Source: Macrostomum lignano (taxonomy: Eukaryota). From it: DNA of 64,000 bases. The stretch spans positions 186,001 to 250,000 of the forward strand of contig NIVC01000190.1 in the NCBI GenBank assembly GCA_002269645.1. The letters run 5' to 3'. Below the pieces are notes generated by a model that worked only from the letters and a program-made list of their open reading frames with translations, had not been told where the DNA came from and made no database searches. A program made the translations under genes and the position numbers. This document shows, in pieces, positions 4,563-53,033 of the stretch (the first letter of the stretch is position 1; each line of letters starts with the position of its first letter).

Positions 4563-6753
<2,191 letters not shown>

Positions 6754-7424: not shown

Positions 7425-9450
7425 CCTTAAAATCGCCCCATAATCTCCCTTAAAATCGCCCCAGAATCTCCATTTTAGAATCGCCCCAGAATTGCCCTTT
7501 AAATCGCCCCAGAATCCCATTTAGAATCGCCCCAGAACCTCCCTTAGAATCGCCCCAGAATTCCTCTTTGAATCGCCCCAGAACCTCCCTTAGAATCGCC
7601 CCAGAATACCACTTAAAATCGCCCCAGAACCTCCCTTAGAATCGCTCCATAATCCCCCTTAGAATCGCCCCGGAATCCCCCTTAGAATCGCCCCAGAACC
7701 TCCCTTAGAATCGCCCAGAACCTCCCTTAGAATCGCCCCAGAATCCCACTTAGAATCGCCCCAGAATCCCCCTTAGAATCGCCCCAGAATCCCCTTAGAA
7801 TCGCCCCGGAATCCCCCTTAGAATCGCCCTAGAATCCCACTTAGAATCGCCCCAGAATCGCCCCAGAACCTCCCTTAGAATCGCCCCAGAATCCCCCTTA
7901 GAATCGCCCCAGAATCCCCTTAGAATCGCCCCGGAATCCCCCTTAGAATCGCCCCAGAATCCCACTTTGAATCGCCCCAGAATCTCCCTTAGAATCGGCC
8001 CAGAATCCCCCTTAGAATCGCCCCGGAATCCCCCTTAAAATCGCCCCAGAATCCCACTTTGAATCGCCCCGGAACCTCCCTTAGAATCGCCCCAGAATCC
8101 CCCTTAGAATCGCCCCAGAATCCCCCTTAGAATCGCCCCGGAATCCTCCTTAGAATCGCCCCAGAATCCCACTTAGAATCGCCCCAGAATCCCCCTTAGA
8201 ATCGCCCCAGAATCCCCTTAGAATCGCCCCGGAATCCCCCTTAGAATCGCCCTAGAATCCCACTTAGAATCGCCCCAGAATCGCCCCAGAACCTCCCTTA
8301 GAATCGCCCCAGAATCCCCTTAGAATCGCCCCGGAATCCTCCTTAGAATCGCCCCAGAATCCCACTTAGAATCGCCCCAGAATCTCCCTTAGAATCGCCC
8401 CAGAATCCCCCTTAGAATCGCCCCAGAATCCCACTTTGAATCGCCCCAGAATCTCCCTTAGAATCGGCCCAGAATCCCCCTTAGAATCGCCCCGGAATCC
8501 CCCTTAAAATCGCCCCAGAATCCCACTTTGAATCGCCCCGGAACCTCCCTTAGAATCGCCCCAGAATCCCCCTTAGAATCGCCCCAGAATCCCCCTTAGA
8601 ATCGCCCCGGAATCCTCCTTAGAATCGCCCCAGAATCCCACTTAGAATCGCCCCAGAATCCCCCTTAGAATCGCCCCAGAATCCCCTTAGAATCGCCCCG
8701 GAATCCCCCTTAGAATCGCCCTAGAATCCCACTTAGAATCGCCCCAGAATCGCCCCAGAACCTCCCTTAGAATCGCCCCAGAATCCCCCTTAGAATCGCC
8801 CCGGAATCCTCCTTAGAATCGCCCCAGAATCCCACTTAGAATCGCCCCAGAATCTCCCTTAGAATCGCCCCAGAATCCCCCTTAGAATCGCCCCAGAATC
8901 CTCCTTAGAATCGCCCCGGAATCTCCCTTAGAATTGCCCCAGAATCCCCCTTAGAATCGCCCCGGAATCTCCCTTAGAATCGCCCTGGAATCCCCCTTAG
9001 AATCGCCACAGAATCCCCCTTAGAATCGCCCCAGAATCCTTAGAATCGCCCAGAATCCTCCTTAGAATCGCCCCAGAATCTCCCCTTAGAATCGCCCCGG
9101 AACCTCCCTTAGAATCGCCCCAGAATCCCACTTAGAATCGCCCCAGAATCTCCCTTAGAATCGCCCCGGAATCCTCCTTAGAATCGCCCCGGAATCTCCC
9201 TTAGAATTGCCCCAGAATCCCCCTTAGAATCGCCCCGAAATCTCCCTTAGAATCGCCCTGGAATCCCCCTTAGAATCGCCACAGAATCCCCCTTAGAATC
9301 GCCCCAGAATCCTCCTTAGAATCGCCCAGAATCCTCCTTAGAATCGCCCCAGAATCTCCCCTTAGAATCGCCCCGGAACCTCCCTTAGAATCGCCCCGGA
9401 ACCTCCCTTTGAATCGCCCCGGAACCTCCCTTAGAATCGCCCCAGAATCC
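7425..9450. repeat. ~23-bp minisatellite (TTAGAATCGCCCCAGAATCCCCC) between YIPF1 and selU
   Basis: About 2 kb of tandem copies ending ~80 bp before the selU ATG. Confidence 0.95.
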
Positions 9451-9532
9451 AATCGCTCTAAGAGCCTCCTGGAATTTTGTAAAGATTTTTAAAAATCGCC
9501 CTAATTATCAAAAACGTACCTTGAATATTATC

Positions 9533-12500
9533 ATGCATAACCTGTCACTGGCTTGGTTGCAGTTCGGTCGCTGCCGTGTCACCACCGCGGCCTTAGCGAC
9601 GGTGTGTCGCGTGTTCAGCCGCTACCAGTTAAACAGGTGCAGCACATTTAGCTACAACATCAAGCATAACAATAACAACAGTTCAATTCTAACAGAACCC
9701 AACCCATTGAATTGGGCAGCCTATGACGAAGTGATTGACGTTCGAACTCCGTCAGAATTCGCAGACGATCACCTGCCCGGAGCTGTTAATCTGCCGCTAT
9801 TAGGCGACGGGGATCGAGCAGCGATTGGTAAAACATTCGCCCGATCGCCGTTTGATGGGCGACGCTTGGGAGCATCTGTGATTAGTCAGAAAATCGGTGA
9901 ACTGCTGGGCACTCACTTTGCTGATAAGAGTGTCGATTTTAGGTAAGTCTAGCGTCCTAGAATCCTACATAATCCTTATTTCCTAGAATCCTACAAAATC
10001 CTTATTTCCTAGAATCCTACAAAATCCTTATTTCCTAGAATCCTACAAAATCCTTATTTCCTAGAATCCTACAAAATCCTTATTTCCTAGAATCCTACAA
10101 AATCCTTATTTCCTAGAATCCTACAAAATCCTTATTTCCTAGAATCCTACAAAATCCTTATTTCCTAGAATCCTACAAAATCCTTATTTTCTAAAACTCT
10201 ACAAAATCCTTATTTCCTAGAATCATACAAAATCCTTATTTCCTAGAATCATACAAAATCCTTATTTCCTAGAATCCTACAAAAAATCCTTATTTCCTAG
10301 AATCATACAAAATCCTTATTTCCTAGAATCATACAAAATCCTTATTTCCTAGAATTCTACAAAAAATCCTTATTTCCTAGAATCATACAAAATCCTTATT
10401 TCCTAGAATCCTACAAAAAATCCTTATTTCCTAGAATCATACAAAATCCTTATTTCCTAGAATCCTACAAAAAATCCTTATTTCCTAGAATCATACAAAA
10501 TCCTTATTTCCTAGAATTCTACAAAATCCTTATTTTCTAAAACTCTACAAAATCCTTATTTCCTAGAATCATACAAAATCCTTATTTCCTAGAATCCTAC
10601 AAAAAATCCTTATTTCCTAGAATCATACAAAATCCTTATTTCCTAAAATCCTACAAAAAATCCTTATTTCCTAAAATCCTACAAAAAATCCTTATTTCCT
10701 AGAATCATACAAAATCCTTATTTCCTAGAATTCTACAAAAAATCCTTATTTCCTAGAATCATACAAAATCCTTATTTCCTAGAATCCTACAAAAAATCCT
10801 TATTTCCTAGAATCACACAAAATCCTTATTTCCTAGAATCCTACAAAATCCTTATTTCCTAGAATCCTACAAAATCCTTATTTTCTAAAACTCTACAAAA
10901 TCCTTATTTCCTAGAATCATACAAAATCCTTATTTCCTAGAATCATACAAAATCCTTATTTCCTAGAATTCTACAAAATCCTTATTTCCTAAAATCCTAA
11001 AAAATCCCTATTTCCTAGAATCATACTGTGGTGACTTGGCTGGGTTGATTTTTGTTATTGATGTTAGCTTGTACTTTATTCTGTGTTTGGGGGTGGTGTT
11101 TTTACCTGTCTTGCTCTGTGCGCCTTTCTACAATATCTTGATGTACGCTCTTACTCATGTACTTTCTTCAATCTGGCTAATCTTGTTCTCCACCCCTAAG
11201 CCTTATCCACTAAATGTAGCGTGCTCAATATTTACAATAAAAATCGCAGTCGCTTGCCTTGTATCAAGCGTTTATCGTTCTACAATCTAAAGTGAAGTCT
11301 TTAAACCTACAAAATCCCCATTTCTTAGAATCCTACAAGATCCCTATTTCTTAGAATCTTTCAAAAATCCCCCTTTTCCTAGAATCCTACAAAACCCCCC
11401 CTTTCCTAGAATCTTTAAAAAATCCCCCTTTTCCTAGAATCCTACAAATCCCCCCTTTCCTAGAATCCTACAAATCCCCCCTTTCCTAGAATCCTACAAA
11501 ATCCCCCTTTCCTAGAATCCTACAGAATCCCCCTTTCCTAGAATCCTACAAAATCCTCCTTTCCTAGAATCCTACAAAATTCCCCTTTCCTAGAATCCCA
11601 CAATATCCCCTTTCCTAGAATCCCACAATATCTCCTTTCCCAAAATCCTGGTTAGAAACTGACTAAATGGAGTAGATGTGTCTACAAAATCCCCTTTTCC
11701 CATTGCAAAAAATCCTTAAATTATCAGAATTCTATCTTCGCATCCCAATATCTTAGTGCCCTAAAATGCGTCGCAAGGTGTCTTGCAAATTTCATAATTC
11801 TTCATAATTATTGAAATCCTCGCCAGGCCGTTAATCTACTGCTGGCGCGGCGGCCAGCGCTCCCACTCTCTAGCGATCGTGCTTTCCCAGATTGGCTACC
11901 AGCCAACAGTTCTTGCCGGCGGCTACCGGGCCTACAGGCGCGTCGTTGTGAAGTCACTGAATGACCTTGCCGGTGTTGAGCCGCCTGTTGGACGACTTAA
12001 ACGCGCAGTGGTTTTAGCTGGGCTGACAGGTTCAGGCAAGACTTACCTGCTTGAACGATTGGCTAGACAAGGAGAGCAGGTATGCAATTCTACTGCTTTA
12101 TAGAGTTTACAGTAGATCTCGTCTAGTTTTTAAAGCGCTGCCCGAAAAGAGCCGTTTTAAGTTTAGCCATTTTAGGTGTAAGTTTTTGCTTACGAGCATA
12201 ACATTAGTTAGTAATCTGTAATTACCTGCCTGAAAAGGGCCGTTTTAACTGAACTAGATGTAGTAGAACTAGAAGTGTCTGTAAGTAACCTGCCTGGAAA
12301 GTGCCGTTTTAACTGACTAGATGGAGTAGAACTAGAAGTGTCTGTAAGTAACCTGCCTTAAAAGGGCCGTTTTAACTGACTATATTTAGTAGAACTAGAC
12401 TAGAAGTGTCTGTAAGTAACCTGCCTGGAAAGTGCCGCTTTAACTGACTAGATGGAGTAGAACTAGAAGTGTCTGTAAGTAACCTGCCTTAAAAGGGCCG

Positions 12501-13728
12501 TTTTAACTGACTATATTTAGTAGAACTAGACTAGAAGTGTCTGTAAGTAACCTGCCTTAAAGGGGACGTTTTAACTGACTAGATGGAGTAGAACTAGAAG
12601 TGTCTGTAAGTAACCTGCCTTAAAGGGGACGTTTTAACTGACTAGATTTAGTATAACTAGAAGTGTCTATAAGTAAGATGCCTTAAAGGGGCCGTTTAGC
12701 TGACTAGATTTAGTAGAACCAGTAGTGTCTGTAAGTAAGCTGCATTAAAAGGGCCGTTTTAACTGAACTAGATGTAGTAGAACTAGAAGTGTCTGTAAGT
12801 AACCTGCATTAAAAGGGCCGTTTTAACTGAACTAGATGTAGTAGAACTAGAAGTGTCTGTAAGTAACCTGCATTAAAAGGGCCGTTTTAACTGAACTAGA
12901 TGTAGTAGAACTAGAAGTGTCTGTAAGTAACCTGCATTAAAAGGGCCGTTTTAACTGACTATATTTAGTAGAACTAGAAGTGTCTGTAAGTAAGCTGCCT
13001 TAAAGGGGACGTTTTAACTGACTAGATGGAGTAGAATTGCCTGTAAATAACCTGCCCGAAAAGGGTCATTTAAAACTTTATTTCATACATAAACCCTTTT
13101 TTACAATTGCCAGGTAGTCGATCTGGAGTCCCTAGCAAATCACCGAGGCTCCCTACTCGGGTCCGATCCCAACAGACCCGATCAGCCAAGTCAGAAATCG
13201 TTCGAATCGTCGCTTTATCGAACTCTCAGCCAGCTGGACGCGGACAAGCCGGTGTGGCTGGAATGCGAGTCGGCTCGCATTGGGTATCGCTCTCTGCCGC
13301 AGTCGCTAGTAGCCACCCTGGCCCGGTCGCCCAGAATACTTTTAGAAGCAGAAAGTGCAGACGATCGAGTCAAGCATCTGATTAAACAGTACGGCTCACT
13401 TGTAGAACGTACTGAACTGCTGATTGAGAGGCTCAATCTACTCGGCAGGCATCATTCGAAATCCACAAAAGCAAACTGGCTTGCCGCAGCCGCTGCAGGC
13501 GACATCCCCAAGCTGGTCCATCTATTGCTAGCTGATCATTACGATCCGCTGTATCGCCATAGCAGGCGCCGCTATTTCTTAGAGACTGATAGCAGACGCG
13601 TGATCCGACTGGCCTTGAACTGCAACACTATTCATAGTGACGAGATTTTAGTTCAGCTTAAACAGGCTAGGGATTCACTGCTGTTTGATAATGAACCGTC
13701 TGGCAGAATAGCTGTGAACCGCATTTAG
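9533..13728 (+). CDS. selU: tRNA 2-selenouridine synthase (SelU/MnmH/YbbB family), ~425 aa, with N-terminal presequence; exons 9533-9942, 11827-12079, 13114-13728
   Basis: Rhodanese domain (IDVRTPSEFADDHLPGAVNLPLL...) with active-site loop YCWRGGQRS, then LAGGYRAYR, P-loop GLTGSGKT, DLESLANHRGSLLG, QPSQKSFES, VWLECESARIG and LLADHYDPLY. All are co-linear with bacterial MnmH (E. coli IDVRAPIEF, CCARGGQRS, GCTGSGKT, DLEGLARHRGS, EDESRMIG, LLEEYYDPMY). Introns: AG|GTAAGT...CCAG|G (phase 2) and CAG|GTATGC...CCAG|GTA (phase 0). The spliced frame is open. Confidence 0.95.
9955..11025. repeat. 26-bp minisatellite (CCTAGAATCCTACAAAATCCTTATTT) in selU intron 1
   Basis: About 40 tandem copies starting 12 bp after the donor site. 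Confidence 0.95.
11305..11640. repeat. Variant of the 26-bp minisatellite (CCTAGAATCCTACAAAATCCCCCTTT) in selU intron 1
   Basis: About 12 diverged copies. Confidence 0.85.
12225..13060. repeat. ~63-bp minisatellite in selU intron 2
   Basis: Unit AACTAGAAGTGTCTGTAAGTAACCTGC...GGGCCGTTTTAACTGA..., about 13 copies. Confidence 0.9.
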
Positions 13729-13959
13729 GTAGCTTTTTAGTAATATGGATGAATTAAGTCCAGTGTTTTCAACTTTCTGAATATATTATTATGCATGTCG
13801 AACTTGCTTCTTGTTAAGCAGTACTTAGTTAATTTTGTTGTTTTGATTTTCATTTATACTTTGAGAGACAGACAAAAACCAGGGATAGAGACATTAGCTA
13901 TCAAGGCATGTAGACAACAATATACGAGTGCTAAGGACACAGGACACTTAGGAATTAAG

Positions 13960-14940
13960 ACAGACACCAAAGGGTAGGACAGACACCAAAGGGTAGGACA
14001 GACACCAAGACAGACACCATGACACTAGGACAGACACCAAGACAGACACCATGACACTAGGACAGACACCAAGACAGACACCATGACACTAGGACAGACA
14101 CCATGACACTAGGACAGACACCAAGACACTAGGACAGACAGACACTAGGACAGACACCAAGACAGACACCAAGACACTAGGACAGACAGACACTAGGACA
14201 GACAGACACTAGGACAGACACCAAGACACTAGGACAGACAGACACTAGGACAGACACCAAGACAGACACCAAGACACTAGGACAGACAGACACTAGGACA
14301 GACAGACACTAGGACAGACACCAAGACAGACACCAAGACACTAGGACAGACAGACTCTAGGACAGACAGACACTAGGACAGACACCAAGACACTAGGACA
14401 GACAGACACTAGGACAGACAGACTAGGACAGACAGACACTAGGACAGACACCAAGACACTAGGACAGACAGACACTAGGACAGACAGACTAGGACAGACA
14501 GACACTAGGACAGACACCAAGACACTAGGACAGACAGACACTAGGACAGACAGACTAGGACAGACAGACACTAGGACAGACAGACACTAGGACAGACACC
14601 AAGACACTAGGACAGACAGACACTAGGACAGACAGACTAGGACAGACAGACACTAGGACAGACAGACACTAGGACAGACACCAAGACACTAGGACAGACA
14701 GACACTAGGACAGACAGACTAGGACAGACAGACACTAGGACAGACAGACACTAGGACAGACACACTAGGACAGACAGACACTAGGACAGACAGACTAGGA
14801 CAGACAGACACTAGGACAGACAGACACTAGGACAGACACCAAGACACTAGGACAGACAGACACTAGGACAGACACCAAGACAGACACCAAGACACTAGGA
14901 CAGACAGACACTGGGACAGACACCAAGACACTGGGACAGA
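13960..14940. repeat. GGACAGACA-based compound minisatellite between selU and KAT8
   Basis: CTAGGACAGACA(CCAAGACA/GACA) units over ~1 kb. Confidence 0.9.
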
Positions 14941-15043
14941 CAATGGCAGATTCAGCCCAATCAAGCAACTCCACTCGTGTCGCCATTCCAGCCTTCCAAC
15001 CCCCGGCAAAAGCCAGCCAGCCTAAACCAAGCCAAACCAGCAA

Positions 15044-16731
15044 ATGTCCTCAGCCATCGCTTCATCATCCTCGGGCGCATCAAGTGCAGCAGCAGCGGCT
15101 GCAGGTCCGCAGCCGGCCCTGGAGATCGGTGGCCGGTTCCCAGTGCTGCGAGTTGCGGACGGGCAGTGGTACCCGGCCGAGATCGTGCACAAACGGGAGA
15201 CCGCCGATCGGGCCAACTCGCAGGAGTATTTCATTCACTATCTGGACTTTGACAGGCGACTTGACGAATGGGTCGGCATTGACCGGATCGATGTGAGCAA
15301 CCCAGCTGGGACTCTCGAGTCCGCCGGGCTGGACCCGCTGGCCTCCAGCGGCGGGGACAAGACCCGCCTGACTCGGCACCAGAAGCGGAAATTTCACGAG
15401 ATTCACCACGTGCCGCAGTCGGTTGAAGAGATGGACGCTGCCACTGCCGCGTTGGAGAGGGAGCACCAGGAGCTGACTAAGGTGCCTAGCTTGGGGAATT
15501 GAGTGATTGATTGATCAGTTTATTGGTTGGTTGGTAGATTGATTGATGTTTTATTAATTGATTGTTTCATTGATTAGTTGATTGATTGGCTCATAAGTTG
15601 ATCGGTTGATTGATAGATACGAGCTAGATCAATTGATTGATTTAATGGTTGGTTGATTGATTGATTGATTAGTTGGTTGGTTGGTAGATTGATTGATAGA
15701 TAGATAGATTGATTGATTTAATGGTTGGTTGATTGATTGATTGATTAGTTGGTTGGTTGGTAGATTGATTGATAGATAGATAGATTGATTGATTTATTGG
15801 TTGGTTGATTGATTGATTAGTTGGTTGGTTGGTAGATTGATTGATAGATAGATAGATTGATTGATTGATAGATAGATAGATTGATTGATTTAATGGGGTC
15901 CATGAGAAATGCCCGCAGACGAATTGCCCGCCGAGATTTGCCCGCAGGAGATTTGCCCGTGGAGATTTGCCCGCCGAGCTTTTCCCGCGGAGATTTGCCC
16001 GCAGTGCATTTTGCCCGTGAGCGAATTGCCCGTGGAGATTTGCCCGCCGAGATTTGCCCGCAATGCAATTTTCCCGCGAGCGAATTGCCCGCCGAGTTTT
16101 TTCCCGCCGAGGTTTGCCCGCAATGCTTTTTTCCTGCAGCGCATTTGGCCACGCGGCAGATTTTGTCTGCATTGCCTTCCCATGCTTAGTACGTGTTAAT
16201 CTCAATAAAGAGATTTACACGATCAAAACTTTTTGATAGTAACTGCATATCAAATGCATATTTTGGGGGTAGCAATGTATAGACAGAATCTAGCTGCCAA
16301 ATGCGCTGCAAAAAAGGATCGCGGGCAAACCTCGGCGGGAAAAAACTCGGCGGGCAATTCGCTCGCGGGCAATTCACTCGCGGGAAAATTGCATTGCGGG
16401 CAAATCTCGGCGGGCAATTCTCGGCGGGCAAATCTCCACGGGCAATTCGCTCACGGGCAAAATGCACTGCGGGCAAATCTCCGCGGGAAAAGCTCGGCGG
16501 GCAAATCTCCACGGGCAAATCTCCTGCGGGCAAATCTCGGCGGGCAATTCGTCTGCGGGCATTTCTCGTGCTCCCGATTTAATGGTTGGTTGGTTGATTG
16601 ATTAGTTGGTTGGTTAGTAGATTGATTGATAGATAGATAGATAGATAGATTGATTGATTGATTGATAGATAGATTGATTGATTTAATGGTTGGTTGGTTG
16701 ATTGATTGATTAGTTGGTTGGTTAGTAGATT

Positions 16732-16766
<35 letters not shown>

Positions 16767-18471
16767 TGATTGATTGATTAGTTGGTTGATTGGTTGATTG
16801 ATTGACTCGTGGATTGATTAATCGATAAACAAATTTGCAGATGTTTTACTAATCAATTGATTGATTGATATAATAATTTATTCACAAGTTGCTCAGCAGA
16901 CCACCTGCCCACCCGCACCGCCCCCATCCCAGGTGAAGTACATCGACCTCATCCAGATTGGCAAATACGAGATCACCACCTGGTACTTCAGCCCCTATCC
17001 TGACGAATACGGCAAGCAGACAAAGCTGTGGATCTGCGAGTACTGCCTGAAGTACATGGGCCTGGAGAAGTCGCACAGATATCACCTGTCCCAGTGCGAA
17101 TACCGCCAGCCCCCTGGCAGAGAAATCTACCGCAAAGGCAATCTGTCAGTATTTGAAGTGGATGGCAAGCAGCGCAAACTCTACTGCCAGTGCCTCTGCC
17201 TGCTGGCCAAGCTGTTCCTGGATCACAAAACTCTGTACTTTGACGTGTCCGGCTTCCTGTTCTACATTCTGTGCGAAGTGGACCGGCACGGCTGTCACAT
17301 TGTGGGCTATTTTAGCAAGGAGAAGGACTCGCCGGATAGCAACAACCTGGCCTGCATCCTCACCCTGCCGCCGCATCAGCGCAAAGGCTACGGCAAGCTG
17401 CTCATTTCGCTGAGCTACGAGTTGGCCAGGGTTGAGGGGCTGGTCGGCGGCCCCGAGAAACCGCTTAGCGATTTGGGGAAAGTCACCTACAGGTAGGGAG
17501 CTTCTGTGTCCCTGCTGGGTCTGCCTGTGTCCCTGCTGGGTCTGCCTGTGTCCCTGTTGTGTCTGTCTATGTGTCTGCCTCTGTCCCCGCTGTGTCTGTC
17601 TCTGTGTCTCTGCTGTGTCTGCATCTGTGCCTCTGCTGTGTCTGCTGTCTGTCTCTGTCCCTGTTGTGTCTGTCTCTGTGTCCAAGCTGTGTCTGCTGCC
17701 TGTCTCTGTCCCTGTTGTGTCTGCATCTGTGCCTCTGCTGTGTCTGTCTCTGTGTCCCTGCTGTGTCTGCATCTGTGCCTCTGCTGTGTCTGTCTCTGTG
17801 TCCCTGCTGTGTCTGCATCTGTGCCTCTGCTGTGTCTGTCTCTGTGTCCCTGCTGTGTCTGCTGCCTGTCTCTGTCCCTGTTGTGTCTGCATCTGTGCCT
17901 CTGCTGTGTCTGTCTCTGTGTCCCTGCTGTGTCTGCATCTGTGCCTCTGCTGTGTCTGTCTCTGTGTCCCTGCTGTGTCTGCATCTGTGCCTCTACTGTG
18001 TCTGTCTCTGTGTCCCTGCTGTGTCTGCATCTGTGCCTCTGTCGTGTCTGTGTGTCCAAGCTGTGTCTGCTGTCTGCCTCTGTGTCCCTGCCGTGTCTGC
18101 CTCTGTCTCTGCTGTGTCGCCCCCCGTATCCACTGCCCTGTGCTTCGCTAGATCACCGATTCAATCCCAACCCCCACAGGAGCTACTGGGAGTACGCCAT
18201 CCTAGACTACATCCAGTCGCATCCGTCCTGCACAGTCCGCGACATCTGCTCAGCCACGGCGATCTCTCGCGATGACGTGCAAGACACTCTGCACGGGCTC
18301 GGCCTGTTGCAATACTGGCGCGGCAGCTACGACCTGTGCCTGCCGCAGCGCACCGTTCAAGAGCACCTGCTGCGCATCTTGCCGAGGAAGCCGCAGCTCA
18401 TCGATGCCGCCTGCCTGCAGTGGTCGCCGCTGTATCCGAAGTCGCCCAAGGCTGAGAAACGGGTGCGGTAA
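15044..18471 (+). CDS. KAT8: MYST-family histone acetyltransferase KAT8/MOF; exons 15044-15481, 16933-17492, 18180-18471
   Basis: Chromo-barrel (WYPAEIV...[16 protein letters not shown]), linker [14 protein letters not shown]...[16 protein letters not shown]2HC finger (CEYCLKY...HLSQC), HKTLYFDV, acetyl-CoA motif [18 protein letters not shown], and C-terminal YWRG...CLQWSP. Splice phases are consistent. Confidence 0.95.
15505..16865. repeat. (GATT/GATA/GGTT)n microsatellite mosaic in KAT8 intron 1, interrupted by a foldback element
   Basis: Arrays at ~15505-15890 and ~16585-16865. Confidence 0.9.
15896..16575. mobile_element. 680-bp foldback/MULE-like non-autonomous element with long subrepeat-containing TIRs and 9-bp TSD
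   Basis: Arm 15896-16149 is the reverse complement of arm 16296-16575, both built from TTGCCCG(C/T)...GAGAT subrepeats. GATTTAATG flanks both ends (15887-15895 and 16576-16584). Confidence 0.85.
17500..18115. repeat. ~46-bp (2x23) TGTC-rich minisatellite in KAT8 intron 2
   Basis: Unit CTGCTGTGTCTGTCTCTGTGTCCCTGCTGTGTCTGCATCTGTGCCT. Confidence 0.9.
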
Positions 18472-19139
18472 CTTGCGGCACTGGTGCCCGACTGATCAAT
18501 ATTTAACTGTGCTTATTTTTTACATTAATATTAATTCTACTTTTATTTAGGTAAGTTTAAGATTAGAAAATTCGCATTTTTTACATACTACTCACATCTA
18601 TTTTATTCGGTAGTATAATTCGGTACTGTAAATAGTAAAAGTTGCGTTTTAAATAACATGTACGGTTATAGAAAACAAAATTGCTGTTTTGTCATTAAAC
18701 TAATTATAGTTTAGCAGCTTGAGTACATTCTGTCAATGTATATCCATTCTTATAAGCCCGTTTGCCGCATGCTTACTTATTGTTATTCGTTTTCTTATTT
18801 AAGTCCTTTGTTTATTAATTAATGAAATTAATAAATCGTTAGCAATGGCAACAAACGCGTGTGTTTATCAAGCGGTGGCAATTCAGTCAAGAAATCCATT
18901 TCTGTTATTCTATTGTCGCATTAAAGTTAAAATTTAAAACTAAAAAAGAAAACTTATCATGGTCTTTGTTTGTGTGTCCTTTTACAAGCTAAAAAAACAA
19001 AAAATGTAAAATCCAGAAATTAAAGATAAACAAAAAGTGGAATTGAGAAAAATACGGTGTGAACTTTGAGCAGCACCGAGTCCTGCTCAAGAAAAAACAA
19101 CCCATTCGATCTTTCACAAAGAAGTTGTCAGTAATTCAA

Positions 19140-20640
19140 AGATATCAAATCCCAGGTGCTGCAAATCACAAATCCAAAATCCCAGGTGTTGCAGCTCACA
19201 GATCCCCAAATCCCAGTTGTTGCAGCTCACAGATCCCTAAATCCCAGTTGTTGCAGCTCACAGATCCCCAAATCCCAGGTGTTGCAGCTCACAGATCCCC
19301 AAAATCCCAGGTGTTGCAGCTCACAGATCCCCAAATCCCAGGTGTTGCAGCTCACAGATCCCCAAAATCTCAGGTGTTGCAAATAACAGATCCCCAAATC
19401 CCAGGTGTTGCAGCTCACAGATCCCCAAATCCCAGTTGTTGCAAATCACAGATCCCCAAATCCCAGTTGTTGCAGCTCACAGATCCCCAAATCCCAGTTG
19501 TTGCAGCTCACAGATCCCTAAATCCCAGGTGTTGCAGCTCACAGATCCCCAAATCCCAGGTGTTGCAGCTCACAGATCCCCAAAATCTCAGGTGTTGCAA
19601 ATCACAGATCCCCAAATCCCAGGTGTTGCAGCTCACAGATCCCCAAAATCTCAGTTGTTGCAGCTCACAGATCCCCAAATCCCAGGTGTTGCAGCTCACA
19701 GATCCCCAAAATCTCAGGTGTTGCAAATCACAGATCCCCAAATCCCAGGTGTTGCAGCTCACAGATCCCCAAATCCCAGGTGTTGCAGCTCACAGATCCC
19801 CAAAATCTCAGGTGTTGCAAATCACAAATCCCAAAATCTCAGGTGTTGCAAATCACAGATCCCCAAAATCCCAGGTGTTGCAAATCACAGATCCCCAAAA
19901 TCCCAGGTATTGCAAATCACAGATCCCAAAACCTCAGGTGTTGCAAATCACAGATCCCCAAAATCCCAGGTATTGCAAATCACAGATCCCAAAACCTCAG
20001 GTGTTGCAAATCACAGATCCCCAAAATCCCAGGTGTTGCAGCTCATGGATCCCCAAATCCCAGGTGTTGCAAATCACAGATCCCCAAAATCCCAGGTGTT
20101 GCAAATCACAGATCCCAAAATCCCAGGTGTTGCAAATCACAGATCCCAAAACCTCAGGTGTTGCAAATCACAGATCCCCAAAATCCCAGGTGTTGCAGCT
20201 CATGGATCCCCAAAATCCCAGGTGTTGCAAATCACAGATCCCAAAATCTCAGGTGTTGCAAATCACATCCCCAAAATCCCAGGTGTTGCAAATCACAGAT
20301 CCCAAAATCCCAGGTATTGCAAATCACAGATCCCAAAACCTCAGGTGTTGCAAATCACAGATCCCAAAATCCCAGGTGTTGCAGCTCATGGATCCCCAAA
20401 ATCTCAGGTGTTGCAAATCACAGATCCCCAAAATCCCAGGTGTTGCAAATCACAGATCCCAAAATCCCAGGTATTGCAAATCACAGATCCCAAAATCCCA
20501 GGTGTTGCAAATCACAGATCCCAAAATCCCAGGTGTTGCAAATCACAGATCCCCAAATCCCAGGTGTTGCAAATCACAGATCCCAAAACCTCAGATGTTG
20601 CAAATCACAGATCCCACGATCCCAGGTGCCACAAACCAGA
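19140..20640. repeat. 31-32-bp minisatellite (AAATCACAGATCCCAAAATCCCAGGTGTTGC) downstream of PLCXD copy A
   Basis: Tandem array; the same family occurs at 26330-27545. Confidence 0.95.
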
Positions 20641-20706
20641 TATCCCAAATTTGAAAAACCAGCACCATCCCAGTAACTCCCTCTCAAATCCAGACTCTCC
20701 GCGTCA

Positions 20707-23700
20707 TCACTGGAAGTTGAGCCCGGCAACCGCCTGCACGAAGTCGCTGTCCTCCACAAAGTCGGTGATGGCCACGTTCACGCCTTGGCAGCCGAGCGCC
20801 TTCTTGCCCTGCCGCAGCCAGCTCACGAATGCCCGGTTGCCGGGCAGGCTGAGGGAATTGCGCAAGCTGCTCAGGGGATGCCGCAGGATGAAGCCGGCAT
20901 CTGGCGTGAGCACAGCCTGCAGTACCAGAAAGTGGTTGCCATGTGGCATGGAGTAGGTGCGGTCCAGAGCCGCCACCATCTCGCCAATGTCGGTGGTGTT
21001 GGGCCACGGACTGGGCATCCAGGTGCCGCTCTCCCACAGGGCTGGCAGTTCGCTGCGGTCGAACTGGGAGGCCTGAAATGCCAGCACCGACTGGTTCTGG
21101 GAGCGCAGCTGGGCCAGGCTCGGCACCTCGGAGGCTGGCGGGCTGAGGCGGCGGCCCAGCTTGGAGATGAGCAGCTGCTGGAAGGCCCGCATGTCCGACA
21201 GGCTGTCCATGCTGTAGAAATGGTTGAAGTCCAGCAGCACCGCCTCGGCGGGGTGCGCCGCCACGAAGTCGGCAATCTGAGGGTTGGGTTTGGCCGTGTC
21301 AAACGTGTCAATCTCAAGGCCGGTAATTGCTCGAGCAGAGCCAAGCCGAGATTCCAATTTAGTCTCAAATTAATGTAACTGCACTTGGAATCGAGCCTGG
21401 GCCGCTGGCACAGAGCGCAGGTAAGAGTGTCCAACCTGATCCAGCACCTCCTCCAGGCTGATGGAGATCAGCGAGTGCAGCAGCCGGAATCCGTCGTCAA
21501 ATTTAGCGACTCGCAGGTCCAAATAGCGAATGCCGAGGTCCAGCTGCTGGCGGATGGTCAGCGACTGGGTGCGCCACCACCTCCTCAGGTAGAGGCGGCC
21601 TGCCGTGTTGTTGAAGTAGCTGCAAGAGCCGGAGCAGTTACTACGGCGGATTAATATTGTATGAGTGGATTAGCTAGAGATGAGCATTATGGAGTCAGTA
21701 TTCAGGATGGATTAAGAGTCAGTATTCAGGATGGATTAAGAGTCAGTATTCAAGATGGATTAAGAGTCAGTATTCAGGATGGATTAAGAGTCAGTATTCA
21801 AGATGGATTAGGAGTCAGTATTCAGGATGGATTAAGAGTCAGTATTCAGGATGGATTAAGAGTCAGTATTCAAGATGGATTAAGAGTCAGTATTCAAGAT
21901 GGATTAAGAGTCAGTATTCAAGATGGATTAAGAGTCAGTATTCAGGATGGATTAAGAGTCAGTATTCAAGATGGATTAAGAGTCAGTATTCAAGATGGAT
22001 TAAGAGTCAGTATTCAGGATGGATTAAGAGTCAGTATTCAGGATGGATTAAGAGTCAGTATTCAGGATGGATTAAGAGTCAGTATTCAAGATGGATTAAG
22101 AGTCAGCATTGAGGATGGATTAAGAGTCAGTATTCAAGATGGATTAAGAGTCAGTATTCAGGATGGATTAAGAGTCAGTATTCAAGATGGATTAAGAGTC
22201 AGTATTCAGGATGGATTAAGAGTCAGTATTCAAGATGGATTAAGAGTCAGTATTCAGGATGGATTAAGAGTCAGTATTCAAGATGGATTAAGAGTCAGTA
22301 TTCAGGATGGATTAAGAGTCAGTATTCAGGATGGATTAAGAGTCAGTATTCAGGATGGATTAAGAGGCAGTATTCAAGATGGATTAAGAGTCAGTATTCA
22401 AGATGGATTAAGAGTCAGTATTCAGGATGGATTAAGAGTCAGCATTGAGGATGGATTAAGAGTCAGTATTCAAGATGGATTAAGAGTCAGCATTGAGGAT
22501 GGATTAAGAGTCAGTATTCAAGATGGATTAAGAGTCAGTATTCAAGATGGATTAGGAGTCAGTATTCAGGATGGATTAAGAGTCAGTATTCAGGATGGAT
22601 TAAGAGTCAGTATTCAAGATGGATTAAGAGTCAGTATTCAAGATGGATTAAGAGTCAGCATTGAGGATGGATTAAGAGTCAGTATTCAAGATGGATTAAG
22701 AGTCAGTATTCAGGATGGATTAAGAGTCAGTATTCAGGATGGATTAAGAGTCAGTATTCAGGATGGATTAAGAGTCAGCATTGAGGATGGATTAAGAGTC
22801 AGTATTCAAGATGGATTAAGAGTCAGTATTCAGGATGGATTAAGAGTCAGTATTCAAGATGGATTAAGAGTCAGTATTCAGGATGGATTAAGAGTCAGTA
22901 TTTAGGATGGATTAAGAGTCAGTATTCAAGATGGATTAAGAGTCAGTATTCAAGATGGATTAAGAGTCAGTATTCAAGATGGATTAAGAGTCAGTATTCA
23001 GGATGGATTAAGAGTCAGTATTCAAGATGGATTAAGAGTCAGTATTCAAGATGGATTAAGAGTCAGTATTCAGGATGGATTAAGAGTCAGTATTCAGGAT
23101 GGATTAAGAGTCAGTAATCAGGATGGATTAAGAGTCAGTATTCAAGATGGATTAAGAGTCAGCATTGAGGATGGATTAAGAGTCAGTATTCAAGATGGAT
23201 TAAGAGTCAGTATTCAGGATGGATTAAGAGTCAGTATTCAAGATGGATTAAGAGTCAGTATTCAGGATGGATTAAGAGTCAGTATTCAAGATGGATTAAG
23301 AGTCAGTATTCAGGATGGATTAAGAGTCAGTATTCAAGATGGATTAAGAGTCAGTATTCAGGATGGATTAAGAGTCAGTATTCAGGATGGATTAAGAGTC
23401 AGTATTCAGGATGGATTAAGAGTCAGTATTCAAGATGGATTAAGAGTCAGTATTCAAGATGGATTAAGAGTCAGTATTCAAGATGGATTAAGAGTCAGTA
23501 TTCAAGATGGATTAAGAGTCAGCATTGAGGATGGATTAAGAGTCAGTATTCAAGATGGATTAAGAGTCAGTATTCAAGATGGATTAAGAGTCAGTATTCA
23601 AGATGGATTAAGAGTCAGTATTCAGGATGGATTAAGAGTCAGTATTCAGGATGGATTAAGAGTCAGTATTCAAGATGGATTAAGAGTCAGTATTCAAGAT

Positions 23701-25712: not shown

Positions 25713-26329
25713 GGTGTCAGCTGACGGCTGCTGCAAAGACTGCGATATGATTGCGTTGCGGTCGGTGTATTGGATACCACAGGTGAACCCTCCAAGACAC
25801 AATTGCTGAACCCTCCAAGACACAACTGCTGAACCCTTCAAGACAATTGCTGAACCCATTCTTAGGCACAAAATTACTAGCATTAGAACTATAATGTTAC
25901 TAAGATTCTGCAGAATTTCAAATAAAAATTGGCACAATTAGTTTGCATATTAGAAAAAATAATTTGTCATAATTATTTATTAATAATCAAAGGCACAGCA
26001 TTATTTATTGTATTTAAATCAGATTTCAAACATCAGACGAAAGACGGGTTTAGCACAGACATCGGAAAGAATGTTACAGTCAGGGTCAATATGGGCAATA
26101 ACACTTGTTCAAATCGATTAAACTTGGTTTTACTCACGGTAACAAAAATCTAAACTACAAAACGTGATTAGAACAATGGGACACAGCTTAAAATCAAATC
26201 AAGTAATAAACTACTTCAAATATTAGCTCTAATAAGTGGAGAATCGTATTTGAATTTTTGGTCACTTGATATATGATTAAAAAGGCGCGTGTTAATATTG
26301 TGAGTTTTTATTTAGCGATAAAAAACGCC

Positions 26330-27545
26330 TGCAAATCACAAAAATCAAAATTCCTGGCGTTGCAATCTCAGATCCTCAAATCGCCGGTGCTGCAACTCAC
26401 AGATCTTAAAATCCCAGGTGTTGCAAATCACGGATCCCAAATTCCCAGGTGTTACAAATCACGGATCCCAAATTCCCAGGTGTTGCAAATCACAGTTCCC
26501 AAAATCTCAGGTGTTGCAAATCACATCCCCAAAATCACAGATCCCCAAAATCCCAGGTGTTGCAAATCACAGATCCCCAAAATCCCAGGTGTTGCAAATC
26601 ACCCCCAAAATCACAGATCCCCAAAATCCTAGGTGTTGCAAATCACATCCCCAAAATCCCAGGTGTTGCAGCTCACAGATCCCAAAATCCCAGGTATTGC
26701 AAATCACAGATCCCAAAATCCCAGGTGTTGCAGCTCACAGATCCCAAAATCCCAGGTATTGCAGCTCACAGATCCCAAAATCCCAGGTGTTGCAGCTCAC
26801 AGATCCCAAAATCCCAGGTATTGCAGCTCACAGATCCCAAAATCCCAGGTGTTGCAAATCACAGATCCCAAAATCTCAGGTATTGCAAATCACAGATCCC
26901 CAAAATCCCAGGTGTTGCAAATCACAGATCCCCAAATCCCAGGTATTGCAGCTCACAGATCCCAAAATCCCAGGTGTTGCAGCTCACAGATCCCAAAATC
27001 CCAGGTATTGCAGCTCACAGATCCCAAAATCCCAGGTGTTGCAAATCACAGATCCCAAAATCCCAGGTATTGCAAATCACAGATCCCAAAATCCCAGGTA
27101 TTGCAAATCACAGATCCCAAAATCCCAGGTTTGCAGCTCACAGATCCCAAAATCCCAGGTGTTGCAGCTCACAGATCTCAAAATCCCAGGTGTTGCAGCT
27201 CACAGATCTTAAAATCCAAGGTGCTGCAAATCACAGATTCCAAAATCCCAGGTGTTGCAAATCACAGATATCCAAAATCCCAGGTATTGCAGCTCACAGA
27301 TCTCAAAATCCAAGGTGCTGCAAATCACAGATCCCAAAATCCCAGGTGTTGCAAATCACAGATATCCAAAATCCCAGGTATTGCAAATCACAGATATCCA
27401 AAATCCCAGGTATTGCAAATCACAGATCCCAAAACCTCAGGTGTTGCAAATCACAGATCCCCAAAATCCCAGGTGTTGCAAATCACAGATCTCCAAAATC
27501 CCAGGTGTTGCAAATCACAGATCCCACGATCCCAGGTGCCACAAA
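26330..27545. repeat. 31-32-bp minisatellite downstream of PLCXD copy B (same family as 19140-20640)
   Basis: Same unit and same unique junction sequence next to the PLCXD stop codon. Confidence 0.95.
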
Positions 27546-27616
27546 CCAGATATCCCAAATCCGAAAAATCAGGACCATCCCAGTAACTCCCTCTCAAATC
27601 CAGACTCTCCGCGTCA

Positions 27617-29098
27617 TCACTGGAAGTTGAGCCCGGCAACCGCCTGCACGAAGTCGCTGTCCTCCACAAAGTCGGTGATGGCCACGTTCACGCCTTGGCA
27701 GCCGAGCGCCTTCTTGCCCTGCCGCAGCCAGCTCACGAAGGCCCGGTTGCCGGGCAGGCTGAGGGAATTGCGCAAGCTGCTCAGGGGATGCCGCAGGATG
27801 AAGCCGGCATCTGGCGTGAGCACAGCCTGCAGCACCAGAAAGTGGTTGCCATGTGGCATGGAGTAGGTGCGGTCCAGAGCCGCCACCATCTCGCCAATGT
27901 CGGTGGTGTTGGGCCACGGACTGGGCATCCAGGTGCCGCTCTCCCACAGGGCTGGCAGTTCGCTGCGGTCGAACTGGGAGGCCTGAAATGCCAGCACCGA
28001 CTGGTTCTGGGAGCGCAGCTGGGCCAGGCTCGGCACCTCGGAGGCTGGTGGGCTGAGGCGGCGGCCCAGCTTGGAGATGAGCAGCTGCTGGAAGGCCCGC
28101 ATGTCCGACAGGCTGTCCATGCTGTAGAAATGGTTGAAGTCCAGCAGCACCGCCTCGGCGGGGTGCGCCGCCACGAAGGTGGCCACCTGGGTGAACGAAA
28201 TGAATTAGTGAAATTGGGAATTATGGCGGACTGGTCTGAATGCGGTGAGTGACTGAGTGAATCAGCGAGTGACTGAGTGAATCACCGAGTGACTGAGTGA
28301 ATCACCGAGTGACTGAGTGAATCAGCGAGTGACTGAGTGAATCAGGGAGCGACTGAGTGAGTCAGGGAGTGACTGAGTGAGTCAGGGAGTGACTGAGTGA
28401 GTCAGGGAGTGACTGAGTGAATCAGCGAGTGACTGAGTGAATCAGGGAGTGAATGAGTGAATCAGGGAGTGAGTGAGTGAATCAGTTAGTGACTGAGTGA
28501 ATCAGCGAGTGACTGAGTGAATCAGAGAGTGACTGAGTGAATCAGGGAGTGACTGAGTGAGTCAGGGAGTGACTGAGTGAATCAGGGAGTGACTGAGTGA
28601 GTCAGGGAGTGACTGAGTGAATCAGGGAGTGACTGAGTGAATCAGGGAGTGTCTGTCTATGGCCCAGTCGCTCCTCACCTCATCCAGCGCATCCGGCACG
28701 CTAATGGCAACCAAAGAGTGCAGCAAATAGAACTGGCCCTTGATCAGCGCGACCCGAAGGTCCAGGTATCGAATCCCCGACTCCAGCTGACGTAGCAGAC
28801 TTAACGATTGAGTCTTGGACCAGCGCAGTACCAGCCGTCTGCCTAGCCGATTATTCAACAAAGCCAGCAGCAGCTCGGGTGAGTCCGGGCCCAAAGACCG
28901 GTTGAGATCGAAGCTCGAAGCGAAGCTATCGTGAGAGCCAGGCAGAGCCAGCTGGCACAGCGGCATCGCAGCAACAGCTGGTGGAAGCTGGGACATCCAG
29001 TTGGCGGGGTCGAAATTCGGGACCACGGCACCGTCTGGAGCTGCAGCGGCGGTGGCGCCGGCAGCTTCTGATGCTCTTGATGAGGATCGTCGAGACAT
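27617..29098 (-). CDS. PLCXD: PI-PLC X domain-containing protein, copy B; exons 29098-28679, 28186-27617
   Basis: NWMSQLPP...LCQLALPGSHDS, GPDSPE, RWSKTQSLSLLRQLESGIRYLDLRV...LLHSL. The terminal exon is almost identical to that of copy A. GAG|GTGAGG...CCCAG|GTG junction. Confidence 0.88.
28250..28650. repeat. 20-bp minisatellite (GTGACTGAGTGAATCAGGGA) in the PLCXD-B intron
   Basis: About 20 copies. Confidence 0.9.
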
Positions 29099-52102: not shown

Positions 52103-53033
52103 NNNNNNNNNNNNNNNNNNNNNNNNNNNNNNNNNNNNNNNNNNNNNNNNNNNNNNNNNNNNNNNNNNNNNNNNNNNNNNNNNNNNNNNNNNNNNNNNNN
52201 NNNNNNNNNNNNNNNNNNNNNNNNNNNNNNNNNNNNNNNNNNNNNNNNNNNNNNNNNNNNNNNNNNNNNNNNNNNNNNNNNNNNNNNNNNNNNNNNNNNN
52301 NNNNNNNNNNNNNNNNNNNNNNNNNNNNNNNNNNNNNNNNNNNNNNNNNNNNNNNNNNNNNNNNNNNNNNNNNNNNNNNNNNNNNNNNNNNNNNNNNNNN
52401 NNNNNNNNNNNNNNNNNNNNNNNNNNNNNNNNNNNNNNNNNNNNNNNNNNNNNNNNNNNNNNNNNNNNNNNNNNNNNNNNNNNNNNNNNNNNNNNNNNNN
52501 NNNNNNNNNNNNNNNNNNNNNNNNNNNNNNNNNNNNNNNNNNNNNNNNNNNNNNNNNNNNNNNNNNNNNNNNNNNNNNNNNNNNNNNNNNNNNNNNNNNN
52601 NNNNNNNNNNNNNNNNNNNNNNNNNNNNNNNNNNNNNNNNNNNNNNNNNNNNNNNNNNNNNNNNNNNNNNNNNNNNNNNNNNNNNNNNNNNNNNNNNNNN
52701 NNNNNNNNNNNNNNNNNNNNNNNNNNNNNNNNNNNNNNNNNNNNNNNNNNNNNNNNNNNNNNNNNNNNNNNNNNNNNNNNNNNNNNNNNNNNNNNNNNNN
52801 NNNNNNNNNNNNNNNNNNNNNNNNNNNNNNNNNNNNNNNNNNNNNNNNNNNNNNNNNNNNNNNNNNNNNNNNNNNNNNNNNNNNNNNNNNNNNNNNNNNN
52901 NNNNNNNNNNNNNNNNNNNNNNNNNNNNNNNNNNNNNNNNNNNNNNNNNNNNNNNNNNNNNNNNNNNNNNNNNNNNNNNNNNNNNNNNNNNNNNNNNNNN
53001 NNNNNNNNNNNNNNNNNNNNNNNNNNNNNNNNN
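52103..53033. other. Assembly gap (931 N)
   Basis: Run of N. Confidence 1.

Follow-up and report, generated by a model that had tools for sequence, protein, structure and literature searches.

A nuclear, intron-containing gene of the tRNA 2-selenouridine synthase (MnmH/SelU) family in the flatworm Macrostomum lignano

Structure, family and genomic residence of the gene

A 64,000-nucleotide stretch of the genome of the flatworm Macrostomum lignano (assembly GCA_002269645.1, contig NIVC01000190.1, positions 186,001 to 250,000; hereafter the window) contains a gene of the tRNA 2-selenouridine synthase (MnmH/SelU) family. An earlier note, made from the letters of the window, had proposed a three-exon gene encoding both MnmH modules. 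A scan for open reading frames (ORF) and direct reading of positions 9400-13800 gave identical exon coordinates on the + strand. The joined exons form a coding sequence (CDS) of 1278 nt, which encodes a protein of 425 amino acids (aa) and ends with a TAG stop at 13726-13728. The ATG at 9533 is the sole ATG of the open frame downstream of a stop at 9410-9412, and the donor junction of exon 1 is the same in the GenBank and UniProt models. Both introns are GT-AG (TTTTAG/gtaagt...cgccag/GCC and GAGCAG/gtatgc...tgccag/GTA) and, as had been described, are filled with minisatellites. The position of the gene, co-oriented between YIPF1 and KAT8, was likewise borne out by the domains of the flanking genes, both of which lie on the + strand. 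On the opposite strand, the ORF scan found only ORFs shorter than 80 aa at the gene, and there was no match to tRNA or Rfam features anywhere in the 64-kb window. The gene, its parts and its two neighbors are as follows.

9533..9942, + strand: exon 1 (M1 through the first two nt of the R137 codon), with the N-terminal extension and the first half of the rhodanese domain
9533..9712, + strand: presequence-like N-terminal extension, aa 1-60, without an aligned counterpart in the 20 nearest bacterial/metagenomic relatives
9561..9562 (junction 9562/9563), + strand: candidate spliced-leader (SL) trans-splice acceptor ttgcag/TTC, from reading of the sequence, 30 nt inside the ORF
9943..11826, + strand: intron 1, 1884 nt, GT-AG, phase 2, GC content 0.33, 26-bp minisatellites
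11827..12079, + strand: exon 2, with the active-site loop of the rhodanese domain and the Walker A motif of the P-loop domain
11840..11842, + strand: codon of Cys142, in YCWRGGQRS; when E. coli SelU and 119 relatives are aligned, this residue matches Cys97, the catalytic Cys of MnmH in E. coli/Salmonella
12020..12043, + strand: Walker A motif GLTGSGKT, whose Lys208 aligns with Lys155 of the Salmonella enzyme
12080..13113, + strand: intron 2, 1034 nt, GT-AG, phase 0, GC content 0.38, 63-bp minisatellites
13114..13728, + strand: exon 3, rest of the P-loop/SelU C-terminal domain with DLESLANHRGS, QPSQK, ECES and HYDPLY, then the TAG stop
4626..5960, + strand: upstream neighbor, a Yip1-domain (YIPF1/2-like) gene (PF04893, E 5e-13), split by a repeat-filled intron
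15026..17493, + strand: downstream neighbor, exons of a MYST acetyltransferase (KAT8/MOF-like) with Tudor-knot, zf-MYST and MOZ_SAS domains

The predicted protein scores well above the curated cut-offs of three NCBIfam equivalog models for MnmH. These include TIGR03167, the hidden Markov model (HMM) that the earlier note had named as a check (307.5 bits versus a cut-off of 219.75), as well as NF008752 (381 versus 266 bits) and NF008750 (280 versus 241 bits). The NCBIfam MnmH match spans residues 62-393. Pfam places Rhodanese (PF00581) at residues 63-174, followed by P-loop models from residue 198, and a further annotation, PF26341, is precomputed on the public M. lignano protein model. Both MnmH modules are thus complete and in the expected order, with the catalytic-loop Cys and Walker A intact, and the motifs quoted in support of the original proposal, i.e. 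YCWRGGQRS, GLTGSGKT, DLESLANHRGS, CESARIG and HYDPLY (13537-13554), are all found in the translation. E. coli SelU aligns with the flatworm protein at 30% identity (E 1e-32).

Residues with known roles in the bacterial enzyme are kept. Cys97 is absolutely required for selenation by Salmonella/E. coli MnmH (Jäger et al., PMC4830565). The Walker A residue Lys155 is essential for geranylation, which is abolished by K155A in Salmonella, and Gly67 and Arg129 are invariant in MnmH (PMC4830565). Their equivalents in the flatworm protein are Cys142, Lys208, Gly113 and Arg174, respectively. The position of Cys142 is invariant across the 119 relatives aligned, and 61 of the 64 columns conserved at ≥95% among these nearest relatives are retained. 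As regards the helices inserted specifically in the MnmH rhodanese domain, the segment with the equivalents of Ala63 and Gly67 is alignable in the flatworm protein. An AlphaFold model of a 98%-identical paralogue (predicted template modeling score 0.81) has two confident domains, with most of the enzyme body at a predicted local distance difference test (pLDDT) value above 90. Its N-terminal domain resembles the SelU-type rhodanese 3g5j, and its C-terminal domain is like those of P-loop kinases and of MiaA, a tRNA prenyltransferase; the PDB holds no full-length SelU structure. Judged by its sequence, the flatworm protein is a full-length member of the MnmH/SelU family, and this assignment is solid.

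The best database matches are M. lignano proteins (98-100% identity), although an exact look-up of the public protein among contigs gave no match. These carry no functional name, being listed as 'Rhodanese domain-containing protein' in UniProt and 'hypothetical protein BOX15_Mlig025034g1-3, partial' in GenBank. The GenBank models BOX15_Mlig025034g1-3 have both splice junctions, 9942/11827 and 12079/13114, exactly as we read them. Because the GenBank annotation of this assembly was derived from RNA-seq transcripts (PMC5730564), the gene is transcribed and spliced as modeled, in agreement with the junctions put forward in the earlier note. No expression data for Mlig025034 were found in the published supplements searched.

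Three genomic copies of the gene, on contigs C190, C750 and C1816, have equal exon lengths and splice sites and unequal intron lengths, intron 1 measuring 1884, 1432 and 853 nt, respectively. Exon 2 is 99.2-99.6% identical between copies, and the flanks of the three copies are collinear, in keeping with the hidden polyploidy known in M. lignano (PMC10468722). Pairwise dN/dS (ratio of nonsynonymous to synonymous substitution rates) among the copies is 0.16-0.37, with dS of 0.03-0.05. With the three copies taken together, 16 sites are nonsynonymous and 18 synonymous, against a neutral expectation of 3:1 (p = 4e-4). There are no insertions or deletions (indels) among the copies in the CDS, and 12-30 gap columns in 765 nt of unique non-coding flank. 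The gene is therefore under purifying selection. Its composition is that of the host: GC content of the CDS (0.53) and at third codon positions (0.545) is within the values that the window's host exons span, and relative synonymous codon usage correlates with that of pooled host exons (r = 0.70) at the level of any host gene.

An assembly artefact, or bacterial or algal contamination fused to animal DNA, is the explanation to which the best-scoring homologues, bacterial or metagenomic, might lead. However, the gene lies on three separate contigs with the same animal neighbors, has two spliceosomal introns carrying host minisatellites, uses host-like codons and is covered by junction-spanning transcript-derived models, and no bacterium has a protein closer than 47-50% identity. 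We consider contamination and chimerism excluded for practical purposes, and with them the chimera with a bacterial contig that had been raised earlier as a way for the proposal to fail. All the signs of residence in the host genome are present, namely spliceosomal introns, host codon usage, animal flanks, transcript-derived models and purifying selection.

Minisatellites are abundant around the gene. Arrays at 7425-9450, 9955-11649, 12215-13036 and 14085-14942, with units of 23, 26, 63 and 16 bp, respectively, occupy the intergenic spacers and both introns. The 26-bp units of intron 1 lie at 9955-11026 and 11306-11649, the 63-bp units of intron 2 fill the third array, and the flanking arrays (23 and 16 bp) are built of other units than the introns. 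Minisatellites come within ~80 bp of the start codon, and array lengths vary among the three homeologous copies.

Homologues in other eukaryotes and origin of the gene

A HMMER pass over 1.84 billion representative proteins returned 4104 relatives. Long N-terminal extensions are present in each of the four with the highest identity to the flatworm protein (47-55%). Several of the related sequences come from contigs with eukaryotic features. The cluster P0210/P0356 adjoins an IP3R/RyR-like gene that is a single ORF of 2714 aa, which suggests an intron-poor picoeukaryote. On a contig of P0212, a related cluster, there is a GT-AG intron filled with microsatellite, and the neighbor of P0376 is an AATF-Che1 gene. 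Across the eukaryotic environmental contigs, which are of marine and other origin (L117/L118, L112, L115/L116 and L114), the extensions of the encoded SelU homologues measure 60-190 aa. A search with the picoeukaryote protein identified two named eukaryotes, the cryptophyte Baffinella frigidus (T484DRAFT_1901322, a hypothetical protein) and the amphioxus Branchiostoma floridae x B. japonicum (XP_078605050.1). The latter bears the automated RefSeq name 'tRNA 2-selenouridine synthase-like', so that the reservation in the earlier note about automated annotations in other invertebrates was well placed; the cryptophyte and picoeukaryote homologues extend it. The amphioxus gene has six exons coding for 397 aa, including an N-terminal extension of its own, and lies between KxDL and RRM-protein genes on a 34-Mb chromosome (CM027632.1:18707868-18711014). 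Two single-gene, mRNA-like contigs (L120 and L121, from SRR30522655 and SRR32906204) encode homologues that group with amphioxus (support 98/89), and L121 has an AATAAA signal close to its 3' end. The amphioxus, cryptophyte, picoeukaryote and SRA-contig homologues all score above the same MnmH equivalog cut-offs. By sequence, therefore, the flatworm SelU is not unique among eukaryotes. Neither for other flatworms nor for other animals did searches with the full-length protein, with exon 3 only (to pick up genomic fragments) and in the 1.84-billion-protein HMMER pass bring up a relative closer than ~55% identity, in databases that may lack other Macrostomum genomes.

The likeness to each of these groups has its limits. 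The amphioxus gene is, like that of the flatworm, a nuclear, intron-bearing animal gene encoding an N-terminal extension and the same motifs, and it matches NF008752 with 423 bits. In contrast, its product and the flatworm protein share no more than 35-40% identity, its five introns all differ in position from the two flatworm introns, and it groups with eukaryotic transcripts and not with the flatworm, although sisterhood is not rejected (see below). The algal/protist homologues (Baffinella T484DRAFT_1901322, the marine picoeukaryote clade P0210/P0356/P0212/P0213, and P0242) are the most similar found (47-55%) and are N-terminally extended, but their extensions are mutually unalignable, they are mostly environmental sequences, and the grouping of the picoeukaryote clade with the flatworm is unstable when more eukaryotes are added. 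Bacterial MnmH/SelU/YbbB (E. coli b0503) shares the rhodanese domain with its MnmH-specific insertion, the P-loop domain, the equivalents of the catalytic Cys, Walker A Lys, Gly67 and Arg129, and the co-occurrence of a selenophosphate synthetase in the genome, and the flatworm protein is 42-50% identical to cyanobacterial and proteobacterial members. Unlike these, the flatworm gene is nuclear, has two spliceosomal introns, is possibly SL trans-spliced and encodes a presequence-like extension of ~55 aa; its product sits on a long branch, has no detected MnmE/MnmG partners and has an activity predicted from sequence. Finally, the split SelU of archaea (Methanococcales) consists of the same two modules, which in the flatworm are fused in one polypeptide that scores far under the archaeal cut-offs (53 versus 200 for TIGR04568 and 31.5 versus 180 for TIGR04569).

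In a tree with 80 named bacterial relatives from GTDB, all 38-47% identical to the flatworm protein, the flatworm clade is on a long stem of 1.1 substitutions per site (~1.1-1.3 across trees). Betaproteobacteria are excluded (support 100/95), and the flatworm falls in a polytomy with Cyanobacteria, Alphaproteobacteria, Verrucomicrobia, Planctomycetes and others. Given this polytomy and the even identities, no single bacterial donor is identifiable. E. coli SelU was discarded as an outgroup, since it produced only long-branch attraction, and a viral vector is unsupported, with only two IMG/VR contigs carrying a homologue (39-41% identity). When eukaryote-like sequences were added, the flatworm became sister to the picoeukaryote clade with moderate support (79/66), and with still more eukaryotes its position floats. 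Approximately unbiased (AU) tests did not reject a place for the flatworm within a largely eukaryotic cluster (p = 0.14), nor did they reject amphioxus as its exclusive sister (p = 0.26). The flatworm and amphioxus genes have no intron position in common; because introns turn over, this is not decisive on vertical descent.

These findings suggest an origin of the gene outside the common gene repertoire of animals. Bacterial transfer, transfer from an alga (M. lignano eats diatoms) and ancient retention with many losses are not separated by the trees and AU tests. The earlier description of the gene as transferred horizontally or anciently retained thus holds as regards a resident nuclear animal gene, and the trees and AU tests do not choose among bacterial, algal and vertical origins. 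Tentatively, SelU could date back far in eukaryotes as a gene for an organelle-targeted protein, possibly inherited from the mitochondrial endosymbiont, and survive in scattered lineages that include at least two animal phyla (flatworms and cephalochordates), cryptophytes and picoeukaryotic algae, an idea that we regard as possible and no stronger than that. If it were true, tRNA selenation/geranylation would be an overlooked native trait of some animals and not restricted to prokaryotes, and in those lineages there would be an enzyme to account for old reports of selenium in eukaryotic tRNA. Whatever their history, the scattered homologues in amphioxus, a cryptophyte and picoeukaryotes suggest that the trait is broader than one worm, and they constitute a data set for weighing transfer against repeated loss.

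Predicted function and place of action

The first 50-55 residues of the flatworm protein have no counterpart in the 20 nearest bacterial/metagenomic relatives, which start 15-30 residues ahead of the conserved IDVR (residue 68 in the flatworm). The first 54 aa comprise 5 Arg, 1 Lys, 2 His and 11 Ser/Thr and are free of Asp and Glu; from residue 14 to 31 the sequence is amphipathic, with a hydrophobic moment of 0.53. AlphaFold models the extension at pLDDT below 50, with one helix, and it is retained in all three M. lignano copies. Composition and amphipathicity of this kind are textbook features of mitochondrial presequences. This basic extension of ~55 aa without acidic residues therefore points to import into an organelle, most likely the mitochondrion, and to a placement of the enzyme that the earlier note had left out and that would be organellar instead of cytosolic.

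The 5' end of the mRNA may be more complex than the ORF. The public models of the flatworm SelU are 5'-partial and begin at L6, G12 or V16. The M. lignano spliced leader ends in ATG (PMC8629364), which, joined at the candidate acceptor at 9562, would be in frame with F11. An acceptor inside the ORF would account for the 5'-partial public models. SL trans-splicing at this site is a possibility, under which the character of the extension would stay the same.

Genes for the expected partners were sought in the genome. Selenophosphate synthetase SPS2 is encoded by a multi-exon gene in four copies, one of them at C168:20287-28417. It has an in-frame TGA at the Sec/Cys site ('LKG-TGA-GCKVPQ', C168:20362), indicating that M. 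lignano also has the selenocysteine (Sec) machinery. The 2-thiouridylase MnmA/TRMU is present at full length (333 bits), and several polyprenyl synthases are encoded. In the bacterial family the mechanism is linear and has two steps, from 2-thiouridine (s2U) to S-geranyl-2-thiouridine (ges2U) to 2-selenouridine (se2U), with the intermediate enzyme-bound throughout (PMC9105526). By homology, the flatworm enzyme would bind tRNAs with s2U at wobble position 34. Its P-loop domain, through Walker A Lys208, would transfer geranyl from geranyl diphosphate to the sulfur of s2U34, and Cys142 of the rhodanese domain would then help to swap S-geranyl for selenium from selenophosphate, yielding se2U. SPS2 would supply the selenophosphate, TRMU/MnmA the 2-thiouridine and the polyprenyl synthases the prenyl donor. 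The extension would bring the enzyme into the mitochondrion, the site of the bacterial-type s2U34 tRNAs (Glu, Gln and possibly Lys) made by TRMU. Activity, substrate tRNAs and location are here predictions from homology and composition.

Taken together, we consider it likely that this nuclear gene, which M. lignano has in three homeologous copies, is functional and encodes a tRNA 2-selenouridine synthase imported into an organelle. A number of findings weigh against this conclusion. We found no paper on, or biochemical description of, a eukaryotic SelU, amphioxus included, in the literature searched. The signal of selection consists of few substitutions among young copies. With a stem branch this long, a shift of function is possible. 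At the site of Ala63, which does not vary among the 119 nearest relatives, the flatworm protein has Gly109. Searches of the genome with two HMMs each for MnmG/MTO1 and MnmE/GTPBP3, and with E. coli MnmG, detected neither enzyme and returned only generic FAD-Rossmann and G-domain fragments; because the multi-exon SPS2 was found with the same tool, this is probably not a matter of sensitivity alone. As to location, composition and amphipathicity are the whole basis for suggesting a mitochondrial enzyme, and the portion of the first SPS2 exon that was read starts near the conserved N terminus with no obvious leader, so that selenophosphate would need to get into the organelle.

Some of these findings would fit a real enzyme with a changed job, either an S-geranyltransferase that stops at ges2U or a carrier of sulfur or selenium acting on another substrate, with no selenouridine made. 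Such a change could go with the long stem, with the problematic route of selenophosphate to a mitochondrial enzyme, with the undetected MnmE/MnmG and with Gly109, since the Salmonella substitution at this position (A63P) increases geranylation (PMC4830565). However, Gly occurs naturally at this position in 13 of 129 representative homologues, and we dropped it as a mark of a geranylation-biased enzyme. If the absence of MnmE/MnmG is real, M. lignano mitochondrial tRNAs would be without the xm5 side chain, but tRNA with bare s2U from a Salmonella delta-mnmE strain is still ~40% geranylated (PMC4830565), so that the missing partners are compatible with SelU function. The Cys142 loop, required for selenation only, is perfectly kept together with nearly all near-invariant columns, and SPS2 is present. 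A changed job is thus improbable. Still less probable, to the point of being very unlikely, is that the gene, left over from a transfer, is neutral or decaying and is transcribed without a useful role. The finding of no close relative above ~55% identity in any other animal by the searches above, a patchy distribution typical of dispensable genes, and copies so young that decay would barely be visible yet could be read in this way. Against it, the three copies are intact and free of indels with a significant deficit of nonsynonymous sites, the acquired introns, host codon usage and N-terminal extension imply long residence, and catalytic and near-invariant residues have survived despite the long stem branch.

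A different question is where the enzyme acts. Its substrates could be cytosolic tRNAs (mcm5s2U34 of Lys/Glu/Gln), the extension being no targeting signal. SPS2, and hence selenophosphate, is expected in the cytosol, and E. coli SelU takes s2U-RNA without the native side chain (PMC4830565, PMC9105526). A general review of RNA modifications lists mnm5se2U as also eukaryotic, and the enzyme named in its passages on selenouridine is the bacterial one (PMC7694415). On the other hand, the extension has the make-up of a classic mitochondrial presequence, eukaryotic homologues of unrelated lineages are N-terminally extended as well, and the flatworm protein contains a single Met, which leaves no internal start for a shorter cytosolic isoform. 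A cytosolic site of action is accordingly rather doubtful, if well within reach.

The working, organelle-imported selenouridine synthase that we favor agrees in large part with the earlier suggestion of a domesticated animal SelU serving a selenium-to-tRNA pathway: family membership, residency, purifying selection and the encoding of SPS2 and TRMU all stood, and the enzymatic function stays at the level of a prediction. The gene adds an unstudied animal member to a known enzyme family; the kind of system is not itself new. In reviews of selenium biology, selenouridine in tRNA is counted among the traits of prokaryotes (PMC9312934, 2022; PMC4561486), and selenium-modified tRNA in some animals appears not to be addressed in the literature searched. 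If the favored function is correct, a conserved, expressed animal SelU together with SPS2 would amount to a second genetically encoded use of selenium beyond selenocysteine, probably in organellar decoding. Transgenesis is established in M. lignano (PMC5730564) and gene-knockdown studies exist, which makes the function directly testable in this model organism.

Other features of the window

Farther downstream, the window contains an SDR gene, a long TPR gene, a Pol-kappa-like gene, ZNHIT3 and two amiloride-sensitive channel genes. Apart from the SelU gene, the genes of the window are clearly of animal or eukaryotic type. A tandemly duplicated unit lies at 19047-21470 and 26270-28250. Each duplicate has, on the + strand, a proline-rich, coding-like minisatellite ('...PQIPGVAAHRS...'), followed by a near-identical minus-strand ORF (20710-21369 and 27620-28204) with no Pfam match. 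An assembly gap of 931 N at 52103-53033 falls within the Pol-kappa-like gene region and accounts for the GC content of 0.23 in the 52-54 kb bin.

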